NCBI GenBank assembly: GCA_907165135.1
Contig: OU015569.1
Coordinates: forward strand, 4,092,001-4,156,000
Origin: Oikopleura dioica
Lineage: Eukaryota > Animalia > Chordata
DNA length: 64,000 nt
Direction of reading: 5' to 3'
Shown here: piece after piece, positions 43,392 to 53,520 of the stretch
How positions within the stretch are numbered: the first letter of the stretch is position 1
Layout of the letters: every line of letters begins with the position of its first letter
The notes under the pieces: model-generated
Told to the model about the DNA's origin: nothing
Databases searched by the model: none
What the model saw: the letters and a program-made list of their open reading frames with translations, nothing else
Made by a program: the position numbers and the translations under genes

Positions 43392-46300
43392 ATGGACTTT
43401 GATGATGCCGATCTGGAGGCAGAGCTTGGTGATATTCTTGGGGAGGATAGACCTAAACCAAAGCCGAAAGCAAAAGGCGGGAAGAAAGCGTTTTCTTCGG
43501 TCGAGGAGTGGGCCAACTTTGACAAAATGGTAGCGGGTTGCATGGACGATATCGGAGATGATGACGATGAGGATATTGATGATCCAGACCTACTAGCTGA
43601 GCTAATGGATGTTGCCGAAGACGAGGAAGAGCCCGCTCCCAAGCCGATTAAAAAGCCTCCGGCAATTGTATGTTAAATTTCTATTCTACGGTCAACTTGA
43701 TAATATTATCAGCCTCCCAGAAAGGTAGCCGCTCCTCCTCCTCCAGTGCCAGCGCAGGTTCCTGCGACGCCTGCCGTTTCATCGACGAGTCTTCTTACAC
43801 AAAGAATGGAAGAATATAAAACAGCTGCCATTAGTGCAAAAAATCGCGGTGACAAAGAATCAGCAATCAAGTTAATGGGAACATTCAAGGCGCTGAAACA
43901 GTGCGGTAACAATAATTCGAGTTTTGCTTGTCTTGAGATATTTCATAAGCACAAAACGGTGAAGGATTCGTTGATCCTGGACCTCCTTCTGGCATTCATG
44001 TTAACCAAGCCCCTCCGCCTCAGAATTCATCTTCCACTGCATCCGATACCGCAGCTCCTTCTTCTGGTGGTTCCCTTTTAGATGTTCTTCGACAACATCG
44101 TCATTTATTCTTTGTGCGTCTTCAAGCTGAAACAAACGCGTCAAAAACGAGGAGATACACCAAACAGCTGAAACAATTTGACGATGCTATCAAAGCTGTC
44201 GAAGCTGGTAAAAATGTGGATGTTTCCGGCTTGCCCGTTATGCCTGGAGCTCCGCCATTTCCTAGCGAGGAACAAGAAGTAGTCGCCCCTTCACCTTCTA
44301 CTGAAGAAGCAACGGAAAGCATTCCAGAACAGAGTCGTCCTGAAACGCAGTCAGAGCCGACTGTTGCCAAACCCCAACAGCCCCCTCCTCAACAAGAATC
44401 ACCTCAGAAGAAAGCAGCTATGCAGCAGCCGACTGAATCAGTTTCTTCGACAACCTTGGATCCTCCAAAGTCTGTCCTTGAAGGTCTTCTCCAGCGTCGA
44501 GAAATGATGCAGACAAGGAAATGTTTAATCTCATATTTATATCATTACGCAAATTAAATTTTTACTATTTTTGCGAATCAAAGAGTAAAAATTAACATCA
44601 ATAAGGGTGAAAGCAGAGACTGGCGCTAAAGCTCGACGACTAGAAAGACAGACGAAACAATACGATGCAGTAATAAAATCGTACAGAGGCGGAAAGGCCG
44701 TAGACTACTCATCGCTAGTGGTTCCTCCAGGGGCACCAGATATGCCTGGCGAAACGCAACTAACGCTGCATCAAAGGAACGATTATTACTAGTTTTCTAT
44801 CGATAATTGATATATTATGATAGATGAGGTGCTTGTGTAATCGGCACAGAATGAAACAAGCCGACGATAGTGGAGATCATGCTGCCCCATCGCCAATTAA
44901 CTCCCCGCAGAAAATGCCTTCCCCAGCGCAGCCTCAACAAGTGAACACTTCAAAATGCGCAAAACAACTGGAATTTCTTCAAAATAGACACGAAGAGTTT
45001 AAGAAAGCTGCGATTCAAGCCAGAGATAATGGGAACAGGCAAGAAGCGATGACTTTTATGAAGACCATGAAGTCGCTACAGAACATGATTGAGCATACCA
45101 AAAATGGCCTTCCATGTGATATCAGGTAATCCTTATTTATTATTATTGCGCATGTCGGGGAGTTGTTCGGTTATTTACTACTTTTCTAGTAAAGTCCCAG
45201 CTGCTCCTATTCCTTCTCGCCCAGCGATTGGAACGATTCAGGGATCACAAAAACGCAGTCCAGCTCACTCAAATCTGCTTGAAGATCTGCAAGAACAACT
45301 GAAGAAAGCAAAAACTCTATCAAAAACATTCACGGCTTTGAATATGTTGGATAAAGCGAGTATGATGGACAAATGGGCTTCTGAAACATTCCGAGATATT
45401 TCTGCAGTAGACATTCTAACAAAGCAAGGTCGACCAATACCAGATGTAATTTGGGAAACGCGGCGGGTGAAATCAATCAAGTTATTTACGCACATCGAGC
45501 CCAATCAATGCGAAATCAAAGTTGAGAATTTGCTCGAGATGCCGAAAGATCTCCACAACGAAAGTATATTTGTTCAAGGAACAGTTCTATAACGAATGCT
45601 TATTTCAAACATGAATCCTAAAGACGAATCGTAGGAATATGAGACAATAATTTGAACTGTAAATAGTGCACTTTCCATATCCAAGAGAGCCAGAATGCAT
45701 CTTCCGTTCTGGATACGTTAAATCGAGTGCGAACATCAACCTTGAATTTAAACATGTTGTTGGAATCGATCGTCAGAAGAATGCATTCAAACGAGCGATT
45801 GAACGAAAGCCTGTCGAGTTTGAAGTATTTAAAAAAGGAGGAATATTTAGTTCTGACAGGTAAGCGGCATTGTTTCGAAGCTTCGTATTAATCGTTTTAG
45901 ATCTCTTATGAAGAGCGCTATAAAGTTGACAGATTTCGAAACTGAATGTGAAATCAGAAAAGTCCTTCCCCTCGTCGCAAATAAGAAGTCAGTTGCGAAA
46001 ATTCAAGTGCGACTAAGACTGAGAGAGCCGATGGAGAAGGCTCAAGTTGTCGAAGAAGAAATGCAGTGGGCTATTCTCGACTCTGTTGCAAAAAAATCTC
46101 AAGCGAAGAAGCCGGCCACCAGAGCTCAACCAACATCACAATCGGCAGCTCAGCAACGGAACTCAAACTTGCCAAAATTAAAACCAAAAAGCGCTCTGAA
46201 ACATGATATTGCCATTGCGAAGGGAGGGATCGAAATCGCGAAACAAAAAAGAGATCAAGAAAAGTTCCAAAAGTTCTCACAACAAGTCAAATTACTTGAA

Positions 46301-46498
46301 GACGAATTGGCACGTTCTCGGGAATATGCGAGATCGCACCCGGCTGATTACAAAGTGATTTGCGCAAATTATATTCAAAAATGTATGACTGGACTGGAAA
46401 TGGCTGAAGAGCAAGGATGGACGGAACAAGCTCTCGATATCTCGAAAAAAATTGGCGCATGCAATGCCGAAATCAAAAGTCTAAGCGAGGGCTTTTAA
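43392..46498 (+). CDS. CC2D1: CC2D1A/B (Lgd/Freud-1) DM14-repeat and C2 domain protein
   Basis: Acidic DDPDLLAEL N-terminus. DM14 repeats QRMEEYKTAAISAKNRGDKESA and QNRHEEFKKAAIQARDNGNRQEA. C2 region with FKRAIERKPVEFEVFKKGGIFSSD. Confidence 0.9.
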
Positions 46499-46575
46499 TC
46501 ATAAAATACCGATTTAACATAAGTGAATCGCGGCTAACTTAGAAATCACCAAATAAATTATTTTCTTAAGCCTAT

Positions 46576-47255
46576 ATGAAGCAGTTAAGGTTGTCTACTT
46601 TGCTACCTCCTCCAATCATTCGCTATTTTAATCGAGAAGAAGCAAATGGCCAACCGATGCAAGCTCACCAACGACGCACCAAAACCCAGCTACTAATGGA
46701 AGCTCACAACAAAATCAAAAAGATGCTCAGCCCGGAAACTACTCCCAGCCTCCTCCAGTTAATAATCCTTCCCACAATACACAACACGCTTTTCCGCCAC
46801 CTAACCACCAAAAAATTCGAAAGAAGGGCCGCCGGAATGATAGAAAAAGTCACGGTGGAGGTACCACTTACAGATCGAATGAAAGAAAACCATCTGCACA
46901 ACGACAAAATGAAAGAGAAGAAAATCGACGAAAGAAAACATCGAAAAATTCGAAAAAAGATAGAGCTCCTCCTCCAGAAACTTGTTGTCTTCCAGGGACT
47001 CGCTCTAAAATAACACCAGATGAGAGCGAATCAAGGAGCAGTCAATCTTCTGAATTCAAAGAAAAGTCCAGCAAAGTCAGGGATGATACGATGGAACGAA
47101 GTCATCCAACTCCGAGTTATCCGAGTCCTGCTCCGTATATGGACCAAATAGATCTTATGCCTCCTCTTTTTACTGGTAACCCCGTTTCGGAAGAGGGCCC
47201 AACGACTCGTCTGCCTCCTTCAGAAAACGGTGTCAACGCGCCAGCAGCAATATAA
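46576..47255 (+). CDS. Uncharacterised intrinsically disordered protein (2 exons)
   Basis: MKQLR followed by a 47-nt GT-AG intron (46590-46636) opens a stop-free frame RSKWPTDASSP...NGVNAPAAI* to 47255. This frame is not in the supplied ORF track. Confidence 0.6.
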
Positions 47256-47454
47256 TACTTCACTTCGAATATATCCAAATAAGTTCAACTTTATTCATTC
47301 TAATTCTTCAATATTCAACAGAAAAACTCAATCCGCTCAAATGAAACCCCAGATTGTCTTCTTCTTGATTAAAATTTCTGTGATTTCATTGATTCAAAAG
47401 TTATTCAAAATTCTATCTACTGTTCAATGTCAGCTTTAACAAACATAAATTAAG

Positions 47455-48133
47455 ATGTCGGTTGGGACGGATAGTGGGAGAAGGAGTAACTCAGCAGACG
47501 AAGCTCCAGATCCTGCTACTTTCTATCAATGTAATGTTTGCCTCGACACAGCTAAAGATCCAGTTGTTTCATTGGTAAGCGTAACGACTTCAAGTTGTTA
47601 TCTGATTGTGTTCTTCAAGTGTGGGCATCTATTCTGCTGGCCCTGTATTCATCAGTGGATAGAAACGAGACCACAGAAGCAAGAATGTCCGGTTTGCAAA
47701 GCTGGAATCGGAAAAGACAAAATGGTGCCAATTTATGGACATGGTCAAGGTAAAGTTAGCACGACTCTCGCAGGTAATTAAAAATCCTATTAGAACAAAC
47801 AGATCCGCGAACGAAAAACATTCCTCCCCGACCTCAAGGATCGCGTCCAGAACCGGATCGTCGCGGGGCATCTTTTGGAAACCCGCTCGGAGGAACGCAG
47901 TTCTCATTTGGAATCGGCGCTTTTCCTTTTGGACTTTTCGGAATCGGATTTAACGCAGCTGGGGGTGGGTTCTTCGGCGCACCTCAAGCTCCTAACCAGG
48001 TAACAGCAGTTGAAACTAACAGTCATAACGTATTTTTTATCAAAAGGGCCAAACGACAGAGGACGAAGAATTCCTATCAAAGGTGTTTCTTTATATAGGC
48101 TTGATATTCATCGTGTGGATATTCCTATCGTAA
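47455..48133 (+). CDS. RNF5/RNF185-like ER/mitochondrial RING E3 ligase
   Basis: [17 protein letters not shown]|[31 protein letters not shown]; [13 protein letters not shown]; [11 protein letters not shown]; C-terminal TM segment [20 protein letters not shown]. Confidence 0.93.
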
Positions 48134-48547
48134 AATGTCTCTTGCCGCTCCAAATTACCTTCCGCAATAATTTCATGTGTATTTAATGAATTTTAAAACC
48201 AAAATTTTCAAAAAATGAAGAAACTATCCTCTTTCTCGAAAACTTTAAAAAAGTTGTTTTACTTTTACTGTACCACCCCGCATTGAGGCTCGGAACTTAC
48301 TTTATGAACCGTAAAGAGTAGACGATTTTCAGTGTATATACAGCTTCGTGACTACTAGAAAACTGAATAAAGCAATAGGGAGTCAAACTTAAACTCCACC
48401 ATCAGTAACTGTAAAACAACTTCGGGGAACTATTCCGTTGTTTTTTATCACTACACTTTCCTCATTTCGCTTCAACTGTTCGTTTGATCAATATATGTAT
48501 GATTCTTTCTGATTCAAAAAAGCCTCCAAAAGTGTTTTGAAGACAAG

Positions 48548-51137
48548 ATGTTAAATTGGACCAAACCGCGACTGGCGTCGATCGCCGGTCGATCGCGCAC
48601 TTTGAGAACGCGGACTGAGAGTGTGCCAAATTTAAAATTGAAAGAAGCGATTTCCGGATACGAATTTAACTCTAATGTCGACTCAGCAAATAAATACGAC
48701 GAGGGACCCTACAATTTTAACAAGTAAGAGTTATTTTCTGCTGAAATATTCAGTCAAAGTATTTTCCAGCGTGGAGTCATCCATGTACGCTCATCACATT
48801 AAAATTGGGGAAGAGTTGGAAAAGCGAAACGCAAAGCATCAGAATCTCCAGCGACAACACTTTATGAACACTCGTTACTCGCAGGGACGGGCTCTAACTG
48901 GAGCTCAATTGAAAGATCGTTTCTATACGATCCCAGAATCGGACTTGGAAAAGCTATCGCCCACTCACGCAAGGCAGCCTTTCAAGGGCGACTTGCGACA
49001 CACAAGGTAAATTGAAAATTCTTGGGATCAGGTTTTATTGCCTCGGGTACGGTAATTTGATGGGATAAAGAAAGAAGTCTTAAACTTGGAAGACGTTGTA
49101 AAATCGATTCGCTTTTCTTAATTCCTTGTCAATAAAGTCTTCCAGCGGGTCGTTGAAAAAGTCAACGGGCGATCTCATTTCGTCTTTGAGATGCTAAACA
49201 AGAAAGTGTTTCGTTAGCTTTATAAGTAAAAGTATCTTCACCTTGTATTCGTCTTGCTCTAGGTTCGGGTCGGCTTCTTCGTACTTTTGGATATCTGCAA
49301 GCTTTGTAGCGAAAATAACGTTAAAAAATAAAAGAAAAAAGCGCATTTTAGTATTGACTGAAGGTTTGACTGTGCTTGGACAGTAATAGTCTTTATATTG
49401 CAAGGAAAGAGCTCGCGGATCATCCCAGTGAACCCTGAACTCTTTACCGGGACTCGGTCGTTAATAAATAATCATTCAACGACACCAAACGATGCGTATC
49501 ATAATGATACTCATCAACATCGTGAGAACGTAGATGCTGTCGTTTGCCTGTGAGACTGTTTTTCATGGCCCTAAGTGATTTCTCTCATGAATGATTCAAA
49601 TATAACATTTTCCATCTTCAGGCGTGAGACGTTTCACAACAAAAACGCGACGAAAATGTTCAATGCAACTGGCGAAAGCAAGATCTTACGACGGCGCGAA
49701 GCTGAAAAGATCATCAAGTGGCTTGACAACGAAACCTTCCAGGAGCCCTCGAAACGGGTGATTCTCTATGGCGAAAAAGGTGTCGGCAAGACGATGAGCT
49801 TGCATCAAATCGCCCACCATGGGATGACGAAAGATATGCTAGTTTTGTACGTTGGAAATTTATGGAGGGTCGCGACGAAAAATTATGCGACGGAGCCACT
49901 AAATGTTAGGAAAGATATCACAACGCAGGGTTACGTTAGCGTGGAGAAGCGCGATCTGTGGGAGTCTCGTTACGACCCCTTGATGCAACAGGGGAGCCAC
50001 CGCCCTGAGCTCAAGAGCGTTATCACCTACGACCAGGTCGGTGAATGTTCTCGAATAAACCATCATCGTTACCGATTTCTACCTCTAGCCTGAGCCCGCC
50101 GGAATCTGGCTAGAACATCTCAAAGCGATCAACTCGCACATCCTCGAAAAATACAAAACAACCAGAGATTTCCAGCTCTCAGTCAAAGAAACGCTCCCCG
50201 CCGGAAGGTTCGACCGCGCTCATTATCTCCTCTGTTCAAAGATTACTTTCTAGCACCTTGTTGCAAGCCGTTAATGAAGCTTTATCTCGCTCGATTAAGC
50301 GCTGCGATGGAATCAAATTCATCATCGAAGAAATTAAATCTCTGGCGCCAGAAATGGCCAAGGTCGGTTGTTTCTTTAGATAATGATTCACATTATCCAT
50401 CAGGCCGGAAATCCAGTCCTTGTTTGTGTGGACCAGTGCAATTACCTAACGCAGGGATGTCACGTCGTTGTTTATGACGATCCAGAGAAGATCCGTTCTC
50501 ATCCGGAACAACGAGGTCTTCCTCACTGGACAATCAGGGCAAAGTTCGAAGAAGTTGTCACAGACTCAAGGCGGTTAAATTTAATGCGTCATTTTAAAAG
50601 GTAATACTTTCTGTCGAATTCACGAATAAATTATTTAGTCTCCTGGACGACGACTGGGCCGGTGGGTTTGTCGTTGGAGCAACAACTACTTATCAGACGA
50701 TAATGGGAAACCATTCGTGGAAACTTGGTCGACACAATGACAGAAGTAGAATTGAAACGGAAGATTTACATGATGTTCTCGGTGATCAAGGCTTCCAGGT
50801 TGGTTATTTTCAGATCATCGCAGAAGTTTACTTTGTTTCGTTAAGGATAGCTGGCATCCTTTTATCCCTGTCAGGTTAGAAGATCTTGATCGAGATGAGC
50901 TAGATGCTTATTCGCAGTATTTATATTCTAAGGAAAGGGCTATACTCCGCTTTGTATATTTACGAACTTTTTATTTGTAAGCATAATCACCTGTCGAATA
51001 AGATGAATGTTTCCGAATAACCCTCTAAGAATATAATCTATGGAAGAACGGAGAACGAAATGTCTCAACAGTTAATAGAAAAGATGTCTGGTGGCAATCC
51101 TGATAAATTCTTTAAATATTGCTATGAAATGGCATAA
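48548..51137 (+). CDS. DAP3: Mitochondrial small ribosomal subunit protein mS29 (DAP3)
   Basis: Presequence-like N-terminus; RFYTIPESDLEKL; VILYGEKGVGKTMSLHQIAH (human LLYGEKGTGKTLSLCHVIH); PVLVCVDQCN; DSWHPFIPV; SGGNP near the C-terminus. Confidence 0.88.
49080..49346 (-). CDS. 72-aa secreted peptide precursor nested antisense in the 614-nt DAP3 intron
   Basis: Exon 1 49346-49242 MRFFLLFFNVIFATKLADIQKYEEADPNLEQDEYK. 48-nt GT-AG intron 49241-49194. Exon 2 HLKDEMRSPVDFFNDPLEDFIDKELRKANRFYNVFQV*. TATAAA at 49397-49392 and AATAAA at 49039-49034 on the minus strand. Confidence 0.7.
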
Positions 51138-51217
51138 AAACTTTTCTGGGAAATTGAACAAATGATTGAATTTGACTTTTTTTAGACTGCAACAAGATTA
51201 TCGGTCTTACGTTAAAG

Positions 51218-51825
51218 ATGGCAGCCGGAAAAATTCCAGCAGTTCCGTTTTTTCTTCGCGGAGTTGTATGCAAGGTTAGAAAACGCTCATTTTTGTTTCT
51301 CTCTCTCTCTCTGCGTTTGGTTACTAAAATTGAAATTGTAGGGTTTCGGTCGAGGATCAAAAGAACTGGGATGTCCGACGGCGAATTTCTCCGATGATGT
51401 CGTCGCCACTCTGCCTGAAGGCCTTGACAATGGAATCTACTATGGTTTCGCTAGAGGTGAGTTGATGAGAAAAAACGTATGCTCATGAAGGCTATTTTAG
51501 TTAATAATGATCAAGTCCACAAAATGGTTGCATCTATCGGATGGAATCCATTTTACAAAAACACAAAACGAAGCTTCGAGACACACATAATTCACGAGTT
51601 TCCTGAAGATTTTTACGGAGCCGATTTGAGTGTTTTGGTTTGTGGATATTTGCGGCCAGAGAAAAACTACGATTCGCTGGAAGCTTTAAAAGGTTTGCAT
51701 TCAGTTAGATTTAATTTTAGCTGATTTTTTGCATTTCAGATGATATTCAACAGGACATTCGGAATGCCGTGGAAAAATGTTCAAGTCCGGACTACGAAGA
51801 GTTAGTTAAATCCTCGTTCAAGTGA
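51218..51825 (+). CDS. RFK: Riboflavin kinase
   Basis: FFLRGVVCK|[23 protein letters not shown]|..[49 protein letters not shown]. Confidence 0.96.
51299..51312. repeat. (CT)n microsatellite in RFK intron 1
   Basis: Run TTCTCTCTCTCTCTCTG. Confidence 0.7.
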
Positions 51826-52061
51826 TTCTACCAGCAACTCCATCAACTCAATAATTTCCAATGCGGCTAACTGAATTAGATTAGTCGAGTCTGCGTTTCA
51901 ATCAAAACGTTTTTGATTCTCAAAATACTCCGATTTTAGTCTGTGATCTTTTTCAATCCTGCTTTTCTTTTGACATATTATATATTTATGTGAACTTATT
52001 AGTTTACGGAAATGATCTGTTTTTAATTAAAAGAATCTTTAATAAAGAAAAATATGTAAAG

Positions 52062-53520
52062 ATGTCGTTTCGGTTCTTTTCTGGAAAAGACTATTTCTCC
52101 GCGCTCAATCTATCGACGAGTGCGGGCGACGACGAAATTAAGAAAAGCTTCAGGCAGAGGCTGAAACAATTTCAAAATGCATTACGCCCCGTATTTTCTA
52201 AAGCAATTGTAACAGCCCTTGTTTGGCATTTTTCACGAGTCTATCACCCTGATCGAAACTCGGGGCAAGACAATGGAACCTTCATCAAAATCAATAAAGC
52301 GTACGAAACTTTGAGCAATGCAAAGCTGCGCCAGATCTGTCAAATTCATTTGGAGAACGAAGAGTTGGGCGAGTTTCTCGACAATGTAGCGCAAGCAAAT
52401 GATGCTGACCACACGCTGTTCGATTCGCTCTCCGTTGACGAGCTTTTACGCCGCTTCGATGAGTTCCGGTTTTATAAGAAAACTGGAAAGCCGAGAGTAA
52501 GACTGGAAAAGACAATTATCCATGTTGACCAGTCTACTGTGGAGCAGCAGTTTACCTATGGGAAGAAATTTAGTGGCTCCGCAAAATGGGGATTCTGCCG
52601 GGTTAAAGGTAAAACAGCTACCACCTCATAGGGCTGATAAGTTTACAGGCGCAAACTTTGGTTTTGACGATGACTTTATGTACAACAATAAGAAATTCTT
52701 CTATGGCTTCGATATCGAACACAAAGGTTACAAAAGGAAAAACGAAAAGAACTTGTCTATTTTTGGGAATTTGTACGACTATCACTTGTCCATCTATAAA
52801 ATGTCCGCTCATTTTCAACATCCAGTCGCGAGGGTAAATCTCGCTCATATGATAACCTTGACCGTAACTTGACTTTAGATCGAGCCTTTTGTCACGACGC
52901 ATGACTTCTTTACGCAAGACATGAGGTCGATCTTGGCAGACGAAGATGACCTTGACACATTTACTAGGAATGTTATCCTAAATCCTGGATGCAAATTGAG
53001 AATTCATCATAATTACGTTTTCAAGAAAGGTCAGTTGTTCTATTCAAAAGTCAAGTTTATTATGTAGTTTAGACATTTCTCTTGGCATGGACGAGATTAG
53101 ACTGACTCGCACTCCATCGAAGATAATCATCAAAGCACCAGTAAAAATGACAATCAAGAAGTCGTCTGTTTCTTTTTGTCCCTTTTCGAAAGTTCTTGTT
53201 TTCGAATACAAATCAGACCAGGGAGGATCTTTTCTTGGCATGAGTCTTCAGGTTCGTCTAGCAGTCCATTGATCTTACTTAAACTCGATGTCTAGCCTTT
53301 AGTGAGGATAAGTGTGTCCGACTGGATTGAAATGTACCAGAATCCTTCTTTCGAGATGATTTGGGAGTGCATAAGTCCCGTGATTTCTGTCAAGTTCATC
53401 AGACATGGAGTGAAAACTTCCCTCGACCAGATCACCATTACTGATATCATCGACGCCATTACTGTCAAATCGCCCGATGTCGAGGTAGTCTTTGAGGTTG
53501 ACTCCAAAGTTGACATTTAA
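52062..53520 (+). CDS. DnaJ-domain protein, possibly DNAJC11-like
   Basis: DYFSALNLSTSAGDDEIKKSF..YHPD..FIKINKAYETLSN is a J domain with HPD. SVDELLRRFDEF loosely resembles DNAJC11 TPAEIREEFERL. Later exons are beta-rich. Whether all exons belong to one gene is not certain. Confidence 0.6.

Follow-up and report, generated by a model that had tools for sequence, protein, structure and literature searches.

A putative small secreted-protein gene nested antisense in the long intron of DAP3 in Oikopleura dioica

Introns in the Oikopleura dioica OKI2018_I69 annotation have a median length of 49 nt (PMC8008620). A stretch of 64,000 nt from the X-specific region of this genome (contig OU015569.1, positions 4,092,001 to 4,156,000; hereafter the window, whose own numbering is used throughout) carries the DAP3/mS29 gene, one intron of which extends over 615 nt, about 12 times the species median. 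The question raised by this locus is whether the intron houses a gene of its own on the opposite strand and, if so, what kind of product that gene makes. An earlier, sequence-only reading had answered that it holds a complete precursor gene for a candidate new, non-amidated tunicate neuropeptide or hormone, with its own promoter and poly(A) signal. The first part of that answer, a self-contained and conserved protein-coding unit on the minus strand between DAP3 exons, is supported by codon usage and by conservation across lineages, which together argue that the unit is more than the product of chance, and we hold with high confidence that it is a real protein-coding gene. The nature of its product is less certain, and the evidence points away from a short processed peptide.

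The minus-strand unit and its coding signal

A script check found every element of the earlier description on the minus strand, exact to the base. The coding part begins with an ATG at 49346-49344 and consists of two exons. Exon 1 (49346-49242; 35 codons) encodes Met-Arg, an 11-residue hydrophobic core, and an acidic stretch that includes KYEEADPNL, and exon 2 (49193-49083; 37 codons) encodes a conserved core of acidic character, SPVDFFNDPLEDFI, followed by an amphipathic helix with NVFQV at its C-terminal end. The exons are separated by a phase 0 GT..AG intron of 48 nt (49241-49194; GTGAAG...TTGTTTAG), the modal intron size for the species, the final three bases of which form an in-frame TAG. 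The TAA stop codon (49082-49080) is followed 40 nt later by an AATAAA poly(A) signal (49039-49034), the single minus-strand copy in the host intron, which stands 27 nt before the host donor site. A TATAAA at 49397-49392, 46 nt upstream of the ATG, is a candidate core promoter; a second minus-strand TATAAA lies within the nested intron (49224-49219). The entire unit, from 49397 to 49034, is contained in the host intron (49007-49621). The proposed Inr-like CAGTC was found where expected (49372-49368); however, the same string recurs at 49360-49356 and 49558-49554, and since it occurs three times on the minus strand of the host intron, the element is not distinctive. A CCTTCAG (49358-49364, minus strand) ends 11 nt upstream of the nested ATG and, judged by its sequence, could act as a spliced-leader acceptor in place of, or alongside, a TATA-driven start.

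The two-exon translation was identical, by script comparison, to a 72-amino-acid protein that is already public (CAG5096002.1; UniRef100_A0ABN7SF03), and the peptide gene is therefore not new in the sense claimed earlier. The record, entitled Oidioi.mRNA.OKI2018_I69.XSR.g14433.t1.cds, is an AUGUSTUS model without name, function or comment, and has the same sequence and exon structure as the model examined here; what the present analysis adds is its nested position, a test of the coding frame, and evidence of conservation. AUGUSTUS with RNA-seq hints was the annotation method of the Okinawa O. dioica genome (Bliznina et al. 2021, PMC8008620). Because AUGUSTUS uses the same sequence signals that had drawn attention to the unit, the public model does not constitute independent evidence for the gene.

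How often such an arrangement arises by chance was estimated with 4000 first-order Markov sequences of 615 nt, in which a GT..AG intron of 40-70 nt was permitted. A spliced open reading frame (ORF) beginning with ATG and having at least 72 codons was present in 49% of the random sequences, and the ORF alone therefore carries no weight. The frequency fell to 1.3% when a signal-like N-terminus was required in addition to the ORF, and to 0.25% when the ORF was accompanied by a TATAAA and a poly(A) signal in the correct places; all four features were combined in none of the 4000. Codon usage was scored with a table built from 20 long open stretches in other parts of the window. The score was positive in the proposed frame only, in both exons, and negative in the remaining five frames. 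When stop codons were excluded from the score, exon 1 reached +6.5 bits, within the top 0.3-1.8% of null open frames, and exon 2 reached +3.9 bits, within the top 5%; the nested intron, when read in frame, gave a negative score.

Conservation of the minus-strand frame in other lineages

Sequences related to the nested gene were recovered from two further sources. A 738-nt European Nucleotide Archive (ENA) contig from another isolate encodes a protein, P0002, that corresponds to exon 1 and the nested intron read through unspliced. The start codon and the ORF are kept in this isolate, 32 of the 35 exon 1 residues are identical to those of the window, and the nested intron is also 48 nt long. Two of the changes fall in the hydrophobic core and are conservative (L5V and F8L), so that its hydrophobicity is kept, and 5 of 15 read-through positions are changed in the middle of the intron. 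A search with the upstream DAP3 exon uncovered ORFs of several O. dioica lineages, which were 97%, 96% and 86% identical to it. One of these, P0005 (ENA, 155 amino acids), comes from the 86% lineage and corresponds to window positions 48780-49286. It consists of the DAP3 exon followed by 80 plus-strand codons that run past the splice donor into the intron; P0005 is thus a chimera from prokaryote-style gene calling, in which the DAP3 exon has been fused to the antisense of the nested gene.

Codon for codon, the tail of P0005 lies in antisense register with the nested gene, and it could be aligned with the window across the final 15 codons of exon 1 and through exon 2. The nested orthologue was inferred from the opposite-strand amino acids of P0005 by minimal change. 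In this register the third codon position of the nested gene is codon position 1 of the plus strand, and the nested second position is plus-strand position 2. Whereas the plus-strand amino acids of P0005 and the window were identical at 21 of 52 positions (40%), the inferred nested proteins were identical at 41 of 52 (79%). Neutral simulations passed through the same inference gave 26.5 +/- 2.1 identities, with a maximum of 36 in 3000 runs, compared with the observed 41. Of the single-base changes at these two positions, 21 fell on the nested third codon position and 5 on the nested second (binomial p = 0.0025; simulation P = 3e-4), and the sole length difference within the exons was one whole codon. 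Identity amounted to 12 of the last 15 codons of exon 1 and to about 28 of 37 in exon 2, the whole-codon deletion included. The codon of P0005 antisense to the TAA encodes Leu and so allows for a stop codon here in the P0005 lineage too.

Conservation differed among the segments of the inferred orthologue. The best conserved of all stretches was SPVDFFNDPLEDFI, in which 14 of 14 residues were retained, and KYEEADPNL was retained at 9 of 9 positions. In the C-terminal ANRFYNVFQV, 7 of 10 residues were kept (A being replaced by E, F by I or V, and Q by H). The RK pair that precedes this segment was altered, R becoming K and K becoming K or Q as read from the antisense residues, and Arg42 appears to have been replaced by Ile or Val. 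In the flanking and intervening sequence, no alignment between the window and the P0005 lineage was obtained for the 3' untranslated region (24 versus 15 codons) or for the nested intron (16 versus about 13 codons). In the rest of the host intron, no alignable sequence was detected between the window and L003, a metagenomic contig from a diverged lineage (JGI Ga0115008_10082406), although the adjoining DAP3 exon is 85-90% identical. The bias toward third positions, the 79% versus 40% identity, the whole-codon indel and the unalignable flanks together are the mark of purifying selection on the frame read from the minus strand, as far as can be judged from the sequence comparison. Lack of ORF conservation in other isolates had been named as grounds for rejecting the gene, and the ORF proved to be conserved both in P0002 (32/35) and in the P0005 lineage (41/52).

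Beyond these lineages the protein found no counterpart. Pfam assigned no family to either nested exon, and a search of the species' own genome (64.28 Mb, 19 contigs) for paralogues returned self matches only at E <= 10. A word search and a full HMMER search of 1.84 billion representatives recovered only the 72-amino-acid protein itself and P0002; a scan of JGI metagenomes with the protein gave no match, and neither did a degenerate DNA pattern for DFFNDPLEDFI in genome and viral contig collections. The PDB sequence search produced a single chance match (E = 0.83), and the ESM Atlas yielded only chance-level look-alikes of the 'transmembrane segment plus helix' type. A literature search for the peptide strings found no match, and no Oikopleura peptidome paper was among the matches listed. 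The nested gene thus appears to be restricted to O. dioica lineages.

One could envisage that the unit is non-coding, being either a chance ORF in an AT-rich intron or an antisense transcript or regulatory element of DAP3. Such a view is in keeping with the spliced ORFs of equal size that half of the random sequences hold, with a public model built on the same signals as the sequence-only reading, and with the lack of relatives beyond the species complex in the representative and JGI metagenome searches. It does not account for the substitution pattern of a minus-strand coding frame (21:5, and 79% versus 40% identity), for the frame-specific codon bias in both exons, or for an exon indel of one whole codon where the flanking intron is unalignable, and we regard it as very improbable. 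These comparisons show the unnamed 72-codon AUGUSTUS model to be a real gene under purifying selection and no annotation artefact.

The predicted product and its possible modes of action

The encoded protein starts with Met-Arg and an 11-residue core of Phe, Leu, Ile and Val, followed by Ala-Thr-Lys, and 9-residue Kyte-Doolittle hydropathy means reach 2.67. This segment is consistent with a cleavable, if short, signal peptide that may be cut after Ala13 (IFA/T). An N-terminus that resembles a signal peptide, with an acidic region after it, agrees with the earlier description. The predicted mature chain of 55-59 residues (about 6.8-7.2 kDa) has no cysteine, contains 15 Asp/Glu against 9 Lys/Arg, and has an isoelectric point of about 4.5. 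The AF2 model is all-helical, and residues ~48-72 form one strongly amphipathic helix with a maximum helical moment of 0.67 (P = 0.005 versus shuffles). On these features we consider it probable, with appreciable doubt, that the product enters the secretory pathway. A cytosolic, FFAT-like reading of DFFNDP was set aside, since the distribution of charges would place the C-terminal domain on the luminal side.

The inferred orthologue suggests that all of the mature chain that it covers is under selection, the central SPVDFFNDPLEDFI most of all, and this distribution makes the whole protein or a long fragment the most likely working product; a C-terminal peptide of 7-10 residues is less likely to be the product than either the whole protein or a long helical fragment. 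We propose that the gene is transcribed from its own promoter, antisense in the one long intron of DAP3, that the signal-type segment would direct the chain to the secretory pathway and be removed around Ala13, and that an acidic, cysteine-free helical protein of about 55-59 residues would remain. That protein, intact or as a long helical fragment, may then bind a partner through its conserved hydrophobic face. Taken in full, this proposal, a lineage-restricted gene for a secreted acidic helical protein acting whole or as a long fragment, has in our estimation a little better than an even chance of being correct. Several points weigh against it. The orthologue was read from opposite-strand amino acids, and hence changes that are synonymous on the plus strand are invisible; the P0005 alignment starts past the first ~20 nested codons, that is, past the signal part; and the exact 72-amino-acid protein is in the database from the genome record only, on one contig. 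The signal peptide is predicted by rules of thumb; with 11 residues, Asn9 among them, the core is short, and Phe/Leu runs readily arise from T-rich DNA. The AF2 model is of low confidence (mean pLDDT 67) and was made from a single sequence.

Two other fates of the chain have to be considered beside that proposal. In the neuropeptide or hormone precursor envisaged by the sequence-only reading, a convertase would cut at Arg61-Lys62 or after Arg65 and free a non-amidated ANRFYNVFQV or FYNVFQV, the acidic part being a disposable spacer. The order of parts is that of such a precursor: a start resembling a signal peptide, then acidic sequence, then a basic pair that leaves a tail of 10 residues. The P0005 lineage retains NR-x-YNVF-x-V, the core of this tail. 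The genome also has nine matches to PF01483 (P_proprotein) that pass the threshold, spread over some six or seven loci, and these permit such processing without showing it. Non-amidated, tunicate-specific peptides do exist in Ciona (PMC6475428). A disposable spacer is, however, difficult to reconcile with the conservation of SPVDFFNDPLEDFI at 14/14 when the decapeptide is conserved at 7/10, which is the opposite of the relation proposed earlier as a check, namely a C-terminal peptide more conserved than the spacer. The RK pair makes a poor convertase site, appears changed in the P0005 lineage (to K followed by K or Q), and lies amid one continuous amphipathic helix (residues ~48-72), the periodicity of which is unbroken at the proposed cut. 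No similarity to any known peptide precursor was detected in the Pfam, representative and Atlas searches. With conservation, the change of the RK pair and the helix all considered, nothing tested favours ANRFYNVFQV or FYNVFQV as a processed peptide, and we think this outcome improbable.

The hydrophobic segment might instead be an uncleaved signal anchor that holds a microprotein in the endoplasmic reticulum or another membrane, with the acidic helical domain luminal or external, or cytosolic if the orientation were reversed. Its position at the very N-terminus would suit an anchor, and no strong -3/-1 site follows it (Ile at -3, Ala at -1); moreover, the Atlas look-alikes were N-termini of bacterial sensors, in which a transmembrane segment is followed by a helix. 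The Atlas scores are nevertheless at chance level by the tool's own statement, and the uncharged run of about 12 residues (Phe3-Thr14, then Lys15) is short for a membrane span. Membrane anchoring thus seems unlikely to us.

If the protein is secreted, it might serve as a larvacean-specific signalling molecule, either through a C-terminal peptide NR-x-YNVF-x-V or as a helical acidic hormone of about 30-55 residues. We give this only a slim chance, and of its two forms the helical hormone is more in line with the conservation than the C-terminal peptide. Were it to hold, O. dioica would have a signalling molecule without relatives in other animals, the promoter of which is lodged in the intron of a housekeeping gene in the X-specific region. 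The protein shares with the generic prepropeptide layout, including that of the Ciona Ci-LF and Ci-YFV/L precursors (PMC6475428), a small size, a signal-like start, an acidic region, basic residues near the C-terminus, no amidation signal, and a restriction to tunicates. We claim no sequence similarity to Ci-LF or Ci-YFV/L, the distinction from which was drawn from the peptide names given in PMC6475428 and not by alignment. The C-terminus is VFQV in the window and VFHV in the inferred orthologue, not YFV, YFL or LF as in the Ciona peptides, and there is a single candidate peptide here but several in each Ciona precursor.

The gene would add one more lineage-restricted, predicted small secreted protein to those of a chordate whose peptide repertoire is almost uncharted, and SPVDFFNDPLEDFI together with the C-terminal amphipathic helix offers a concrete conserved motif for antibodies, in situ probes and knock-down. 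Its broader significance is limited: this genome commonly has nested genes and orphan secreted proteins, and the model was already public. Perhaps reusable is the method by which a nested frame was recovered from an opposite-strand ORF joined to the host exon by prokaryote-style gene calling. Read-through ORFs of this kind can be mined for nested genes in lineages of which no DNA sequence is available.

The host intron and its neighbourhood

The sequence-only reading had placed the long DAP3 intron at about 49008-49621. We find its bounds on the plus strand to be 49007-49621, with a donor AAG/GTAAAT and an acceptor TTCAG/G, and the reading frame continues across the join. The assignment of the downstream exon stood, in that it matched Pfam DAP3 (PF10236; E = 6e-14, 52 bits, cut-off 23) and mS29/DAP3 chains in the PDB (E = 3e-9). 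The upstream exon, in contrast, gave no family or DAP3 match in Pfam, PDB sequence, PDB profile or Atlas searches, and we infer that it belongs to DAP3 on four grounds: the splice signals are good; the frame is continuous across the join; the ORF from 48548 starts with an Arg/Ser/Thr-rich, presequence-like segment; and '...GDLRHTR' is followed in other lineages by an immediate stop or by a further 11 or 80 residues, as non-coding sequence would be. Since the ATG at 49587 is in frame, the 'intron' might, with small probability, instead separate two plus-strand genes, an arrangement that would leave the verdict on the small gene unchanged.

L003 contains DAP3 exon 3, at 91% identity, and 259 nt of the preceding intron (its positions 1-259). 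It ends before the expected nested ATG, which in the window sits 276 nt upstream of the exon. Since the intron before exon 3 is at least 259 nt long in this diverged lineage as well, the long intron is not peculiar to the Okinawa genome. A block ATGAAT(G/A)ATT (window 49587-49596; L003 224-233) stands exactly 35 nt before the acceptor of DAP3 exon 3 in both sequences, in an intron that is otherwise unalignable between the two, and its ATG is in frame with the exon in both. The block could serve DAP3 as an alternative start that omits the presequence or as a branch-site region, or it could be part of the nested gene's promoter. An Rfam scan of the host intron gave no match, and hence no snoRNA accounts for its length. 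Pairing of the intron ends (49007-49046 with 49582-49621) was rejected as a structural feature, the duplex energy being -11.9 kcal/mol compared with -10.7 +/- 2.8 for shuffled sequences (P = 0.30).

The recognisable genes between 44 and 53 kb, the nested gene aside, are all on the plus strand: a CC2D1-type DM14 exon (44114-44554), a RING finger (47455-47778), DAP3 itself (48548 to ~50900) and a DnaJ domain (51990-52628). The nested gene is the sole antisense unit within the co-oriented run from 44114 to 52869, a run that is consistent with the 'operon-like region' suggested earlier. Opposite-strand genes nested in introns are common in Drosophila (PMC3814207) and have been noted in compact Oikopleura genomes (bioRxiv 10.64898/2025.12.04.692336). 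The present gene resembles them in being a complete unit with its own candidate promoter and poly(A) signal and in occupying a probable host intron that far exceeds the host's others; unlike the typical case, the host intron here is only 615 nt long, and the poly(A) signal ends 27 nt from the host donor.

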